A stretch of 64,000 nucleotides of DNA. Source: Macrostomum hystrix. Taxonomy: Eukaryota > Animalia > Platyhelminthes. The position numbers and the translations under genes are program-made. The DNA is taken from the NCBI GenBank assembly GCA_950097015.1, contig CATNEN010000024.1, positions 5,952,001 to 6,016,000 of the forward strand, read 5' to 3'. The notes below the pieces were generated by a model. That model had not been told where the DNA came from. It worked only from the letters and a program-made list of their open reading frames with translations, and ran no database searches. Shown piece after piece: positions 49,735 through 57,800 of this stretch (its first letter is position 1; every line of letters starts with the position of its first letter).

Positions 49735-51000
49735 AGCTATAGGATACATCAGGTGACAAACCCCACACACCTAGGATACATCAGGTGACAAACCCCACAC
49801 ACCTAGGATACATCAGGTGACAAACCCCACACACCTAGGATACATCAGGTGACAAACCCCACACACCTAGGATACATCAGGTGACAAACCCCACACACCT
49901 AGGATACATCAGGTGACAAACCCCACACACCTAGGATACATCAGGTGACAAACACCACACAGCTAGGAGACATCAGGTGACAAACACCACACAGCTAGGA
50001 GACATCAGGTGACAAACACCGCACACCTAGGATACATCAGGTGACAAACACCACACAGCTAGGAGACATCAGGTGACAAACCCCACACAGCTAGGAGACA
50101 TCAGGTGACAAACACCACACAGCTAGGAGACATCAGGTGACAAACACCACACAGCTAGGAGACATCAGGTGACAAACACCACACAGCTAGGAGACATCAG
50201 GTGACAAACCCCACACAGCTAGGAGACATCAGGTGACAAACACCACACAGCTAGGAGACATCAGGTGACAAACACCACACAGCTAGGAGACATCAGGTGA
50301 CAAACACCACACAGCTAGGAGACATCAGGTGACAAACCCCACACAGCTAGGAGACATCAGGTGACAAACACCACACAGCTAGGAGACATCAGGTGACAAA
50401 CACCACACAGCTAGGAGACATCAGGTGACAAACACCACACAGCTAGGAGACATCAGGTGACAAACACCACACAGCTAGGAGACATCAGGTGACAAACACC
50501 ACACAGCTAGGAGACATCAGGTGACAAACACCACACAGCTAGGAGACATCAGGTGACAAACACCACACAGCTAGGAGACATCAGGTGACAAACCCCACAC
50601 AGCTAGGAGACATCAGGTGACAAACACCACACAGCTAGGAGACATCAGGTGACAAACACCACACAGCTAGGAGACATCAGGTGACAAACACCACACAGCT
50701 AGGAGACATCAGGTGACAAACACCACACAGCTAGGAGACATCAGGTGACAAACACCACACAGCTAGGAGACATCAGGTGACAAACACCACACAGCTAGGA
50801 GACATCAGGTGACAAACACCACACAGCTAGGAGACATCAGGTGACAAACACCACACAGCTAGGAGACATCAGGTGACAAACACCACACAGCTAGGAGACA
50901 TCAGGTGACAAACACCACACAGCTAGGAGACATCAGGTGACAAACACCACACAGCTAGGAGACATCAGGTGACAAACACCACACAGCAAGGAGACATCAA
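49735..51000. repeat. Minisatellite, 32-bp unit AGGAGACATCAGGTGACAAACACCACACAGCT
   Basis: Tandem periodicity, about 39 copies, no spacers. Confidence 0.97.
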
Positions 51001-51345: not shown

Positions 51346-52566
51346 TCAATCGTCGGAGATTCCACTGACTCTCAATGGCAGCAGCTGCAGAGTCTCAACA
51401 GTTCTCAGCCGTCTCCGAGAAGGTCCCGCATCGTCAGAATCTGTCATAGCGGCGCTGGCGGCGGCGGCAGCGGCTGCGGTGGCGGCTGCGGCGGTTGAAG
51501 ACTGGCCCGATCTCAGTGCGGTGCGAAAGCTCCGGCTGTACCGGATGAGAACGAAGAAGTTAAGGCAGGAGTCGACTGGTACGACAACTAGGCCCCAGTT
51601 GGCAACGGTCTCTAGCATGCCGACAACCTGCAGGACAGAGCGCCGGCTGCCGCTGCTCACCAGCACGTAGACAGCCGTGACCACGTGCAGGGCAGCGAAC
51701 GGGAACTCGCAGACCACGAAGCCCAGCGACAGGAGCAGGATGAGCCGGCAGGAGCGGTGCCGGGCGGCCCTGTTGAATGCGTGCCGGCGTAGCGCCGCCA
51801 CCATGCGGCCGCCCATCAGCACAATGGCCAGGCCGGGCGCTATTGTGCCTACAGTCTCCAGGGCGGCGTAGCGAATCAGCACCGGCTGCATGGCCGCCTT
51901 GATGCCGACGTCTACGGGCATTGACATGGCGTCAGGCGGCGTCGGGTGGTTGCTATCGTTGCCGTGGGCTGTCGGCGGACCAATCGGAAGCCGCTGTTCG
52001 GTGTCCAGCGCGTCGCTCTCGTCCAGAGAGACGCTGGAGTCCAGCAGGCGAACTGATGATTCGTTGATGAGCCTGACGCCGACAACGTCGGCGGTGAATG
52101 CCGAGCTGGCGTACACAGCGCCGGCTGAGATGGCCACAATGATCACGAGGGCCAGGGCTTGGCGACGCGCACTCAGGAAGCCGCCGCCGCCGCCGCCACC
52201 GCCGCCGCCGCCTGTCGCAGCCGGTGCGTCAACCGCGGAGCCGCCAGTGGCAGCGGCTGCGGCCGCGCGGAATGGTCGGATGACGGCCAGCAGGCGGCAG
52301 GCGGTGATGAACAGCAGCCAGTGGTTGCGCACAGTGTGCAGCAAGTGGAAGCCGGACTGCAGCTCCAGCCGGCCGGCCAGTCGGTAGGTCAGCAGGAAGC
52401 AGGCCAGGAACAGGCAGAGGGCGATCTCGGCGCCAGTCAGCACCAGCAGGCTGCTGGCGCGGCTGCGAGTTTGCTTGCGCACCAGCGCGCCCAGCAGGCA
52501 GGCGTTGAGAGCCACGGCGAACATCGAGAAGGTCAGGGTCACTGACCAGGTCATGAAATCGCGCAT
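51346..52566 (-). CDS. Rhodopsin-like (class A) 7TM GPCR, peptide-receptor-like orphan
   Basis: Seven hydrophobic segments; TM1 AVALNACLL, TM3 ITACRLLAVIRPF, TM6 FVVCEFP, TM7 DSCLNFFVLI; first ATG 52566; the frame is open to ~52620, where an AG acceptor could add an upstream exon. Confidence 0.85.
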   Translation of the reverse strand: MRDFMTWSVTLTFSMFAVALNACLLGALVRKQTRSRASSLLVLTGAEIALCLFLACFLLTYRLAGRLELQSGFHLLHTVRNHWLLFITACRLLAVIRPFRAAAAAATGGSAVDAPAATGGGGGGGGGGGFLSARRQALALVIIVAISAGAVYASSAFTADVVGVRLINESSVRLLDSSVSLDESDALDTEQRLPIGPPTAHGNDSNHPTPPDAMSMPVDVGIKAAMQPVLIRYAALETVGTIAPGLAIVLMGGRMVAALRRHAFNRAARHRSCRLILLLSLGFVVCEFPFAALHVVTAVYVLVSSGSRRSVLQVVGMLETVANWGLVVVPVDSCLNFFVLIRYSRSFRTALRSGQSSTAAAATAAAAAAASAAMTDSDDAGPSRRRLRTVETLQLLPLRVSGISDD

Positions 52567-53125
52567 TGCCTTGACAATGGCACTAAAAGAATCGCAATAA
52601 TTTAGGCCTGTATCCAACGGCTATTGCCGGTGCCTGATTGCATCAGCGCTTTTATAGGGCCGGCCGGATTCTGTTCTGGATTCTTGCCTGCATCTCGCCC
52701 ACCGAAGCACGTGATTCGCCCACGAATCAGGCCCGGTTGGCTGTTGCACTTTGCTTTGCCTGTTCTTGTCTCGCATCGATGCGTCTGCTAGACACAGTTA
52801 GTCGATGTTCACCTCTTGTCTTCTTCAACTTCCTTTGTGCATAGTCTCATAATGACTTCTAGTCACATTTCATCATAATTTCCTTTCGCTCAGCAATCGG
52901 TACCACCTTCTCTTTCTATCAACTGAACAGGGACAACTAAAACCCTCGGGACGCGAAACGAGCCAATTCATGGCAAAAAATCTGAGGGGCTCGCTTAAAA
53001 GTATTGTTCTATGGCTTTTTCGAGTCTTCTCTGCTATCAGGCAAATTAAAATTGCTTTAGCTGCGGCCAGCAGTGAAGCTAAGCTGAACTATACCAAGAG
53101 AAGCATTTTTTATTCACTTGATGAA

Positions 53126-53779
53126 ATGCCAAGAAAGTGCAGCGTATTTCCGTGCTCGTCAAATTACAACTCTGAAGCCGTTCGAACACGGATATTTGCG
53201 TTTCCCAGAGATCCACAGGAGCGAGAGCGATGGAGAAAGGCGCTGCCAAATATTCTCCAGGTAAGAAACCAGATCATTTGCTGTCATTACTGCTGCATAA
53301 TTCCGCTTCAAATCTACATGACAGTCTCGTCCAAACAACTTGAAACCCAAAATGTATAATTTTAGAGAGTGACTGACAATATGGGCGTGTGCGTAAAGCA
53401 TTGGCCAAGCGATGCTCCAATGGTCAAGAAAAACTCTACCGAAAGGCCAATTAATCCTCCTTCTGTTTTTAATGGAGTTCCTAGCTCGTGTTTTGTTCAG
53501 AACCAAGGTACGAAACTTAAAGATTGCTCAACACTTATCGTCTATATCGATTTTGCCGCTCACAATTATCTTACTTTTATTTTTACTCTTTTTTTAGACC
53601 AGGACCGACAGGCCGAAAAGCGCGGTGTTCTTTCTGACGCGAGGTGCGGCGACATCGATGAGATGGACGCTTTTCAGCTGCTTGATGTTTTGCCGGCATG
53701 GGAAAGTTTTCGAGCTGAGGTGAAAAATTCGGATGTCGTATCTCGACATGCACTGAACACAGCTATTCTGAACGAATAA
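53126..53779 (+). CDS. Spliced THAP-domain-only protein (exons 53126-53260, 53366-53507, 53598-53779; 152 aa), truncated transposase N-terminus
   Basis: MPRKCSVFPC...FAFP...W...VCVKHW...PPSVF gives the C2CH THAP signature; CAG|gtaaga, ttttag|, AAG|gtacga, tttttag| with matching phases 0 and 1; TAA at the arm junction. Confidence 0.75.
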
Positions 53780-53875
53780 TAAATTTTGGGTTTCAAGTTG
53801 TTTGGACGAGACTGGCATGCAGAATTGAAGCGGAATTATGCAGCAGTAATGACAGCAAATGATCTGGTTTCTTAC

Positions 53876-54010
53876 CTGTAGAATATTTGGCAGCGCCTTT
53901 CTCCATCGCTCTCGCTCCTGTGGATCTCTGGGAAACGCAAATATCCGTGTTCGAACGGCTTCGGAGTTGTAATTTGACGAGCACGGAAATACGCTGCACT
54001 TTCTTGGCAT
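53876..54010 (-). pseudogene. Second copy of THAP exon 1 in the right arm, with no exon 2 downstream
   Basis: Same MPRKCSVFPC...LPNILQ|gtaaga; intron 1 is cut 12 nt before its acceptor. Confidence 0.8.
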
Positions 54011-54269
54011 TTCATCAAGTGAAAAAAAATGCTTCTCTTGATAGATTTTTCTTCTAGTTAGAGTGTTGCGTTTTAAATGTTGCTGAGTGTAGTTCAGCTT
54101 AGCTTGACTGCTGGCCGCAGCTAAAGCAGTTTTAATTTGCCTGATAGCAGAGAAGACTCGAAAAAGCCATAGAACAATACTTTTAAGCGAGCCCCTCAGA
54201 TTTTTTGCCATGAATTGGCTCGTTTCGCATCCCGAGGGTTTTAGTTGTCCCTGCAACTGAAATTTCTTC

Positions 54270-55025
54270 GTGACTCTGTCCAATCTTCTCCTCTTTTTGC
54301 CCCAGTCTTCTCCTCTTTCTGCCCTAATCTTCTCCTCTTTCTGCCTAATCTTCTCCTCTTTTTGCCCCAGTCTTCTCCTCTTTCTGCCCCAATCTTCTCC
54401 TCTTTCTGTCCTAATCTTCTCCTCTTTCTGCCCCAATCTTCTCCTCTTTCTGCCCCAATCTTCTCCTCTTTCTGCCCTAATCTTCTCCTCTTTCTGCCCC
54501 AATCTTCTCCTCTTTCTGCCCCAATCTTCTCCTCTTTCTGCCTAATCTTCTCCTCTTTCTGCCCCAATCTTCTCCTCTTTCTGCCCTAGTCTTCTCCTCT
54601 TTCTGCCCTAATCTTCTCCTCTTTCTGCCTAATCTTCTCCTCTTTCTGCCCCAATCTTCTCCTTTTTCTGCCCTAATCTTCTCCTCTTTCTGCCTCAATC
54701 TTCTCCTCTTTCTGCCCCAATCTTCTCCTCTTTCTGTCCAATCTTCTCCTCTTTCTATCCAATCTTCTCCTCTTTCAATCCAATCTTCTCCTCTTTCTGT
54801 CCAATCTTCTCCTCTTTCTGTCCAATCTTCTCCTCTTTCTGTCCAATCTTCTCCTCTTTCTATCCAATCTTCTCCTCTTTCTGCCTCAATCTTCTCCTCT
54901 TTCTGCCCCAATCTTCTCCTCTTTCTGTCCAATCTTCTCCTCTTTCTGTCCAATCTTCTCCTCTTTCTATCCAATCTTCTCCTCTTTCAATTTAATCTTC
55001 TCCTCATTCTGTCCAATCTTCTCCC
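54270..55025. repeat. Pyrimidine-rich minisatellite, 21-22-bp unit AATCTTCTCCTCTTTCTGCCCC
   Basis: Tandem periodicity. Confidence 0.95.
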
Positions 55026-55624: not shown

Positions 55625-57800
55625 TTTAAGTCTCTGAATCCCGATTCCCATCCTCTGAATCCCGATCCCCATTCTCTGAATCCCGATCCCCATTCTCTGA
55701 ATCCCGATCCCCATTCTCTGAATCCCGATTCCCATCCACTGAATCCTTATCCACATTCTCAGAATACCGATTCCCTTCCTCTGAATTCTGATCCCCATTC
55801 TCTGAATCCTGATCCCCATTCTCTGAATTCTGATCCCCATTCTCTGAATCCTGATCCCCATTCTCTGAATCCTGATCCCCATTCTCTGAATCCTGATCCT
55901 CATTCTCTGAACCTGATCCTCATTCTCTGAACCTGATCCTCATTCTCTGAATCCTGATCTTCATTCTCCGAATCCTGATCCCCATTCTCTGAATCCTGAT
56001 CCCCATTCTCTGAATCCTAATCCTCATTCTCTGAACCTGATCCTCATTCTCCGAATGCTGATCTTCATTCTCCGAATCCTGATCCCTATTCTCCGAATCC
56101 TGATCCCCATTCTCTGAATCCTGATCCCCATTCTCTGAATCCGGATCTTCATTCTCCGAATCCTGATCCCCATTCTCTGAATCCCGATTCCCATCCACTG
56201 AATCCTTATCCACATTCTCAGAATACCGACTCCCTTCCTCTGAATTCTGATCCCCATTCTCTGAATCCCGATTCCCATCCTCTGAATCCCGATCCCTAAT
56301 CTCTGAATCCGGATTCCCATTCTCTGAATCCCGATCTTCATTCTCTGAATCCCGATCCCCATTCTCTAAATCCTGATCCCGTTTCTCTGAACCCTGAATC
56401 TCATTATCTGAATCCGATCCCCATTCTCTAAATCCTGATCCCGTTTCTCTGAACCCTGAATCTCATTATCTGAATCCGATCCCCATTCTCTGAATCCTGA
56501 TCCCCATTCTCTGAATCCTGATCCTCATTCTCTGAATCCCGATCCCTAATCTCTGAATCCGGATTCCCATTCTCTGAATCCCGATCCCCATTCTCTAAAT
56601 CCTGATCCCGTTTCTCTGAACCCTGAATCTCATTATCTGAATCCGATCCCCATTCTCTGAATCCCGATCCCTATTCTCCGAATCCTGATCCCCATTCTCT
56701 GAATCCCGATCCCTAATCTCTGAATCCGGATTCCCATTCTCTGAATCCCGATCTTCATTCTCTGAATCCCGATCCCCATTCTCTAAATCCTGATCCCGTT
56801 TCTCTGAACCCTGAATCTCATTATCTGAATCCGATCCCCATTCTCTGAATCCCGATCCCTATTCTCCGAATCCTGATCCCCATTCTCTGAATCCTGATCC
56901 TCATTCTCTGAATCCCGATCCCTATTCTCCGAATCCTGATCCCTATTCTCCGAATCCTGATCCTCATTCTCTGAACCTGATCCTCATTCTCTGAATCCGG
57001 ATCTTCATTCTCCGAATCCTGATCCCCATTCTCTGAATCCCGATTCCCATCCACTGAATCCTTATCCACATTCTCAGAATACCGACTCTGAATTCTGATC
57101 CCCATTCTCTGAATCCCGATTCCCATCCTCTGAATCCCGATCCCTAATCTCTGAATCCGGATTCCCATTCTCTGAATCCCGATCTTCATTCTCTGAATCC
57201 CGATCCCCATTCTCTGAATCCTGATCCCCATTCTCTTAATCCTGATCCTCATTCTCTGAATCCCGATCCCTATTCTCCGAATCCTGATCCCCATTCTCTG
57301 AATCCTGATCCCCATTCTCTTAATCCTGATCCTCATTCTCTGAACCTGATCCTCATTCTCCGAATCCTGATCCCCATTCTCTGAATCCTGATCCCCATTC
57401 TCTTAATCCTGATCCTCATTCTCTGAATCCCGATCCCTATTCTCCGAATCCTGATCCCCATTCTCTGAATCCTGATCCCCATTTTCTTAATCCTGATCCT
57501 CATTCTCTGAATCCCGATCCCTATTCTCCGAATCCTGATCCCCATTCTCTGAATCCTGATCCCCATTCTCTTAATCCTGATCCTCATTCTCTGAACCTGA
57601 TCCTCATTCTCTGAATCCTGATCCTCATTCTCCGAATCCTGATCCCCATTCTCTGAATCCTGATCCCCATTCTCTGAATCCTGATCCTCATTCTCTGAAC
57701 CTGATTCTCATTCTCCGAAGGCTGATCTTCATTCTCCGAATCTTGATCCCCATTCCTTGAATCCTGATTTCCATTCCCTGAATCCTGATCCCTATTTTCA
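55625..57800. repeat. Minisatellite, 20-21-bp unit CTCTGAATCCTGATCCCCATT with higher-order blocks
   Basis: Tandem periodicity; variant block CCATCCACTGAATCCTTATCCACATTCTCAGAATACCGA recurs three times. Confidence 0.95.

Follow-up and report, generated by a model that had tools for sequence, protein, structure and literature searches.

How does a DNA transposon come to carry a transposase 5' end on both of its arms, and could such a locus act on the family to which it belongs? The question is raised by a non-autonomous P-type (THAP) element of 1,326 bp, found at positions 52928-54253 of the window, i.e., the whole stretch of 64,000 nucleotides of Macrostomum hystrix DNA that was analysed.

Structure of the element

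The original prediction had described a 1,326-bp element with an exact 8-bp target site duplication (TSD), and this was borne out, with CAACTGAA at both flanks and the two copies matching exactly. The element starts with CAGGGACAAC and finishes with GTTGTCCCTG, so that its termini are CAGGG...CCCTG. The features of the locus, with the basis of each in brackets, are as follows.

52920-52927, no strand: left copy of the TSD, 8 bp, CAACTGAA (sequence reading; 8 bp is the family norm)
52928-53043, plus strand: left terminal inverted repeat (TIR), 116 bp, the native TIR of the family (in all other copies the inverted repeat at the opposite end is limited to positions 1-116)
52928-53361, plus strand: left arm, 434 bp, which spans the TIR, the upstream region, all of THAP exon 1 and nearly all of intron 1, 101 of its 105 bp, and belongs to the L002/L003/L014 sub-lineage (repeat search, pairwise alignment, copy alignment, tree)
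53126-53260, plus strand: THAP exon 1, 45 codons, with the start codon at 53126 and the GT donor at 53261 (Pfam PF05485 THAP, 25.2 bits, E 2.9e-5, profile positions 1-38)
53366-53507, plus strand: exon 2, with the C-x2-H half of the THAP zinc finger (CVKH), inside the unique spacer (read from the sequence)
53598-53779, plus strand: exon 3, truncated, its TAA at 53777-53779 being made by the junction (comparison with other copies, whose frame runs on)
53775-53776, no strand: rearrangement junction, at which family position 849 meets position 434 in inverted orientation; the two sides share 2 bp (AA) and nothing has been added between them (comparison with seven copies running past 849)
53775-54253, minus strand: right arm, 479 bp, family positions 1-434 inverted, of the other sub-lineage (nearest copies L012 and L006), plus a 46-bp foreign insert (repeat search, pairwise alignment, tree)
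53876-54010, minus strand: second copy of THAP exon 1, with 2 synonymous differences from the left copy and without a downstream exon 2 (Pfam search, alignment)
54044-54091, minus strand: remnant of an unrelated TA-flanked MITE, a nested insertion, comprising 46 nt of its terminal repeat (54044-54089) and its TA (genome search and the full copy L049)
54138-54253, minus strand: right TIR, 116 bp (genome-wide search and copy comparison)
54254-54261, no strand: right copy of the TSD, 8 bp, CAACTGAA (sequence reading)

Inverted arms were present as proposed, but their lengths were measured as 434 and 479 bp instead of 426 and 471 bp. The earlier values were short because they stopped at the mismatches at positions 427 and 431, both of which are polymorphisms of the family. 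The unique spacer between the arms is 413 bp long and not 430 bp. On the other hand, the content of the arms was described correctly, as each of them includes the upstream region, THAP exon 1 and most of intron 1. This intron occupies 53261-53365 (105 bp) and the arm stops 4 bp short of its acceptor. The pairwise alignment showed 11 substitutions between the left and right arms, together with one homopolymer indel of 1 bp and the 46-bp insert of the right arm at 54044-54089.

The joint between the spacer and the right arm was located from both sides. The parental identity, given by the 7 copies that extend beyond position 849, stops at ...GAACGAA (53776), and the identity of the inverted arm to the majority sub-lineage starts at the same AA. 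The two identities thus meet at one dinucleotide, and the joint is clean, with a 2-bp overlap and no filler. A nested insertion without deletion was also considered and ruled out, as the 849 junction lacks an internal TIR.

The Pfam searches were run exon by exon and not on the joined spliced product. With a cut-off of 23.9 bits for PF05485, exon 1 of the left arm (25.2 bits) was above the threshold, and so was its copy in the right arm (54010-53876, minus strand). Exon 2 searched alone gave no Pfam match; the C-x4-C ... C-x2-H spacing, as read from the sequence, spans exons 1 and 2. Six of the seven other copies that hold the whole of exon 2 keep it open, and the seventh ends at a deletion. 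Exon 3 starts in the spacer, and its parental frame extends farther in other copies. All three exons are individually open in the window copy as well as in L002-L007. The GTP-binding/catalytic region is wholly absent from the window copy, whose coding output would be at most a truncated THAP peptide without a catalytic domain. A KP-like truncated THAP protein made from exons 1-3, whose frame is open, might be a second functional option.

Superfamily and search for an autonomous copy

Membership of the P superfamily had been suggested on the basis of the THAP domain and the TSD. Both the domain and the 8-bp length of the TSD were confirmed, and the GTP-binding insertion domain was found in longer copies of the family. 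Two of these, L046 and L048, match PF21788 (TNP-like_GBD) with E values of 1e-8 to 4e-10 and also give a weak match, below the cut-off, to PF21787 (RNase H N-terminal). Furthermore, the longer copies match the structure of the Drosophila P transposase (PDB 6p5a, E 1.3e-3). The THAP domain, the 8-bp TSD and the matches to PF21788 and 6p5a together place the family in the P superfamily. The RNase H-like domain with a GTP-binding insertion, which defines this superfamily, was accordingly found in the family (L046, L048) and not in the window copy.

The original prediction had also looked to a genome-wide search for the autonomous parent, which was not found. No autonomous copy of the family was detected in the assembly, either with Pfam PF12017 or in a protein search of the whole assembly with the GTP-binding-domain region. 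The latter region is represented by four close copies (at least 90% identity) of the catalytic region, all of which are deleted or truncated. The longest candidate for the autonomous parent, on contig C3, is 5'-truncated and carries a 4.7-kb nested insertion. The next relatives are other P families, with no more than 71% amino-acid identity.

Sibling P families (L054-L060 and L066-L069) have 80-87% identity with the first 70-88 bp of the family TIR. Some of the sibling families have long open frames, e.g., one of 663 aa at contig C38:8682569 with 54% identity in the GTP-binding-domain region. It is conceivable that the family could be cross-mobilised by its siblings. No TIR pairs of related P families were found inside the stretches retrieved.

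The family in the genome

Whole-genome searches, carried out with the element and with the sub-terminal region alone, gave about 35 family loci in the assembly; the 5' region is retained at about 25 of them, and about 8 others have nothing but termini. In the search with the sub-terminal region, all 31 candidates were scored. The copies range in size from 591 to 2,517 bp, except for those with nested insertions. The latter include L047:472-4787 (contig C25), with a nested insertion of 4.3 kb, and L063:4555-9262 (contig C3), with one of 4.7 kb. Of the 19 other copies examined, 17 lie between 8-bp TSDs, so the CAACTGAA duplication is the normal footprint of the family and not a chance repeat. 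The termini are the same in all of these copies, with single-base variants in three.

The internal deletions vary, so that copies keep positions 1-849 and beyond, 1-~705, 1-475, 1-452 or 1-~220. After the retained 5' part comes a 3' region that bears no relation to it, and the 116-bp TIR closes the copy. The 1-475 type is represented by eleven copies with the same breakpoints, which means that this derivative has been amplified. Another rearrangement of the repair type was seen within the same family in L050:157-1006 (contig C29:5809556-5810405), an 850-bp copy in which a 3' sub-terminal piece of about 37 bp is repeated three times in tandem.

Self-comparison of the other copies examined revealed no inverted identity beyond 116 bp, and no second locus with two inverted copies of region 117-434 was present among the 31 candidates scored. 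With TIRs of only 116 bp elsewhere and a single foldback of region 117-434, the native TIR of the family is 116 bp long and the foldback was a single event. The foldback is unique in the assembly and is not native to the family. This agrees with the original prediction on several points. A parent family with native TIRs of about 450 bp, which would have explained the arms without any rearrangement, was not seen, and the other copies have 116-bp TIRs only. The 3' end of the family does differ from its 5' end, since the 3' subterminal region of all other copies examined is unlike the 5' one. The proposal that the foldback arose at the DNA level was likewise upheld. Galileo, a member of the P superfamily in Drosophila, is also foldback-like, but its long TIRs are a family-wide property, whereas in M. 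hystrix long arms occur at one locus only and have transposase exon 1 inside.

Origin of the two arms

The two arms belong to different sub-lineages of the family. While 11 differences separate the arms from each other, only 4-5 separate the left arm from L003, L014 and L002, and the copies nearest to the right arm are L012 (4 differences) and L006 (5). In the tree, the left arm formed a clade with L003, L014 and L002 (support 96/85) inside a clade of seven copies (95/92), and the right arm was placed outside both. Moreover, 6 of the 11 differences between the arms fall at sites (25, 125, 167, 330, 427, and 431) that are polymorphic for the same two states in the 21 other copies. If mutations had simply struck at random after a duplication, this count would have a binomial probability of about 3e-6. 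These comparisons suggest that the arms come from different family copies, and two sources are a simpler reading than an intramolecular duplication later altered by gene conversion from other copies, although the latter could leave the same pattern.

The left arm alone has three private substitutions, all of them to A, at positions 385, 389, and 394 (53312-53321), inside a 10-bp stretch of intron 1. This cluster could reflect error-prone repair synthesis, or it could be due to chance.

The additional ~45 bp of the right arm, which had been reported as absent from the left, was present (46 bp) and is now assigned to the terminal repeat of an unrelated MITE. The insert together with its TA gave at least 40 matches in the genome at 98-100% identity, many of them as inverted pairs 0.8-1.2 kb apart. 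A full copy of the MITE at L049:228-1475 (contig C39:11163227-11164474) is about 1.25 kb long and has 142-bp TIRs beginning with CACTCAGCAAC. The MITE family is abundant, with copies of about 0.8-1.25 kb that are always flanked by TA. The insert is the first 46 nt of the MITE terminal repeat at a TA of the P sequence, left over from a nested insertion of which the greater part has since disappeared. The insert was absent from all 21 other family copies aligned, and the same MITE/P junction was found at no other place in the genome. In a lone family fragment with positions 1-164, L064:3234-3404 (contig C15:356733-356903), the family sequence follows a TA and 7 bp of this MITE end, located where the insert lies in the right arm, and the fragment has the rare 125C variant in common with the right arm. 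This fragment may be a relic of the template lineage. By the MITE end and the 125C variant shared with L064, the right arm is tied independently to a lineage other than that of the left arm.

Formation of the chimeric element

The window copy is a one-off chimeric derivative of a P-superfamily transposon, in which positions 1-849 of one family copy, with the upstream region and THAP exons 1-3, stand head-to-head with the inverted positions 1-434 of another, probably as a result of mis-templated gap repair. The gap left by excision of a P-type element is repaired from the sister chromatid or from ectopic copies. Excision of the Drosophila P element leaves overhangs that bear TIR sequence, and the same is assumed here for the M. 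hystrix family.

According to this scheme, P-type excision at the site would have left a double-strand gap, and its two broken ends would have been repaired by synthesis-dependent copying from ectopic family copies. Since both TIRs consist of the same 116 bp, a 5' TIR in another copy could serve the right-hand end for priming just as well as a 3' TIR, and synthesis would then have run inward through the 5' region. The copy that served as template for the right arm would once have hosted the MITE. The new strands made in this way would be the same and not complementary, so they would not anneal, and the gap would have been closed by microhomology end joining. Such repair would explain why the TSD is retained, why the arms are of two sub-lineages and one of them has the MITE tag, why the joint is of 2 bp and why no second copy is present.

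The many differing internal deletions across the ~35 loci with 116-bp TIRs and 8-bp TSDs are the classic signature of abortive gap repair. Abortive repair and template switching are an accepted source of defective and structurally variable copies in the P superfamily (PMC4168063). The deleted and rearranged P elements of Drosophila, which arise by SDSA, resemble the present element in the THAP transposase, the 8-bp TSD, the varied deletions, the microhomology at junctions and the use of ectopic templates. In contrast to the 31-bp TIR and simple deletions of Drosophila P, the flatworm element has a 116-bp TIR and two 5' ends, and its repair pathway is one that we infer. The window copy is most likely an inert repair scar; if it were transcribed, its RNA would form a hairpin whose stem measures about 434 bp.

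The main rival to gap repair is the transposition of a composite formed beforehand, and the two are not separated by sequence alone, since the same facts would fit both. In this case, two copies would have inserted head-to-head, either side by side or one within the other. A deletion between positions 849 and 434, joined at 2 bp of microhomology, would have followed, and the pair would have moved by its outer 5' TIRs, making the CAACTGAA TSD. Arms of different sub-lineages would be expected from two copies, and a perfect 8-bp TSD does enclose the whole unit. The two TIRs are equivalent in sequence along their 116 bp, but the 5' and 3' ends of the Drosophila P element are not functionally interchangeable, which counts against a composite moving by two 5' ends. 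For Ac/Ds, alternative transposition is on record in which the ends used belong to two neighbouring elements (10.1101/2020.01.07.897926). However, neither a second copy nor a remnant of the donor site is present in the assembly, and more steps would be required (two insertions, a deletion and a transposition). We consider this course of events possible but unlikely.

The simplest picture of a foldback is different from both. Here an intramolecular template switch would have placed a copy of the element's own 5' end at its 3' end, after which the arms diverged in place. This corresponds to the original prediction, in which a template switch during gap repair rebuilt the 3' end from the 5' end. 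An inverted 5' end is indeed found at the 3' side, but the element's own 5' end did not hold up as its source, the right arm being of the other sub-lineage. In the AU test, the topology with the arms as sisters had a lnL lower by 15.7 and was not rejected at 0.05 (p 0.06), with 434 columns and few informative sites. Against it, more than half of the arm differences (the 6 of 11 given above) are polymorphisms of other copies, each arm is 4 differences from another copy and 11 from its partner, and the position of the MITE remnant is common to a fragment elsewhere in the genome. Of these points, the count of shared polymorphisms weighs most. Copying of the element's own 5' end is thus highly improbable.

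The M. hystrix assembly was made from PacBio long reads of an inbred line, and its haplotigs were purged (PMC10468722). A second allele of the site is therefore not expected in it, and neither a second allele nor an empty site was found, the left flank being single in this purged assembly. Inverted duplications are possible with such reads, yet a palindromic chimeric read is an extremely improbable source of this locus, because the arms differ at 11 sites and by the 46-bp insert, 413 bp of genuine family sequence lie between them, and the whole has exact family termini and a perfect 8-bp TSD.

Surroundings of the element

An open frame of 423 codons lies on the minus strand at 51346-52617 and has weak, sub-threshold 7TM/GPCR matches (PF00001, E 0.02). 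Its 5' end is about 310 bp from the left end of the element, which puts the transposon in its upstream region. The upstream region of a gene is a typical target of P elements. Three long tandem arrays were also observed on the flanks of the element, with a 32-bp unit repeated 31 times (50000-50999), a 22-bp unit repeated 34 times (54280-55024) and a 21-bp unit repeated 103 times (55631-57796). The second of them starts 19 bp past the right TSD and keeps long open frames on both strands.

Possible role in silencing

Inverted duplications of transposon ends can also be a source of silencing, and three worked plant examples exist, namely Muk, the Ac/Ds composite insertions and the Tam3 Stabiliser (PMC3440606; 10.1101/2020.01.07.897926). 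As in maize Mu killer, transcription from the THAP promoter in either arm, or read-through from a neighbour, might yield such a hairpin RNA (stem about 434 bp), which would feed siRNA or piRNA and repress the family. The RNA was predicted to fold at -913 kcal/mol into a near-continuous stem, and the region upstream of the transposase start codon is present in both arms. Moreover, silencing of transposons by PIWI and piRNA is described in the genus Macrostomum (PMC4604429). As in a locus of the Mu killer type, the inverted duplication extends from the TIR into the 5' portion of the transposase gene. On the other hand, the active autonomous family member that belongs to such a system was not found in the whole-assembly protein search. 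The four copies of the catalytic region, all defective, leave no autonomous family target in the assembly, and the related P families share exact words of no more than 22 nt with the arm, in the TIR only. Furthermore, the 116-bp TIRs of ordinary copies would already be able to form dsRNA on read-through, so the foldback is not qualitatively special in this respect. Repression of the family by the hairpin is thus very unlikely.

With no intact family member in the assembly, a silencer role would be either historical or hard to demonstrate. In the historical version, the foldback, transcribed from the THAP promoters of the arms or within the 5' region of the neighbouring minus-strand gene, would have been the hairpin source of small RNAs that helped to shut the family down. 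Such a shut-down, if true, would account for the absence of a surviving autonomous copy; we regard it as no less doubtful, and if anything slightly more so.

The comparison with known silencers shows likeness as well as difference. Mu killer, a derivative of maize MuDR, gives a read-through transcript and siRNAs and silences MuDR heritably, whereas the M. hystrix element would be a putative hairpin source in an animal host, with no autonomous target in the assembly. The Ac/Ds composites and the Tam3 Stabiliser (NSt, two Tam3 copies head-to-head) resemble it in that inverted 5' or terminal duplications come from two elements, and theirs generate dsRNA and small RNAs. Unlike it, they are plant hAT elements, they were formed via re-replication or from adjacent intact copies, and their function has been demonstrated. 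We know of no animal counterpart in which an inverted duplication of a DNA transposon starts silencing. The hpRNA loci of Drosophila simulans are an animal case in which the inverted duplication of a selfish gene is a source of endo-siRNA; their targets are meiotic drivers and not transposons, and both expression and function were shown there (PMC10317233). If the silencing reading were true, no transposon-derived silencer locus of the Mu killer type would have been described in an animal before this one.

Significance

Under the preferred reading of mis-templated repair, the element would provide a clean natural case, outside Drosophila, of P-type gap repair joining two copies into a two-headed element. 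The variants of the arms and the MITE tag let its two templates be told apart.
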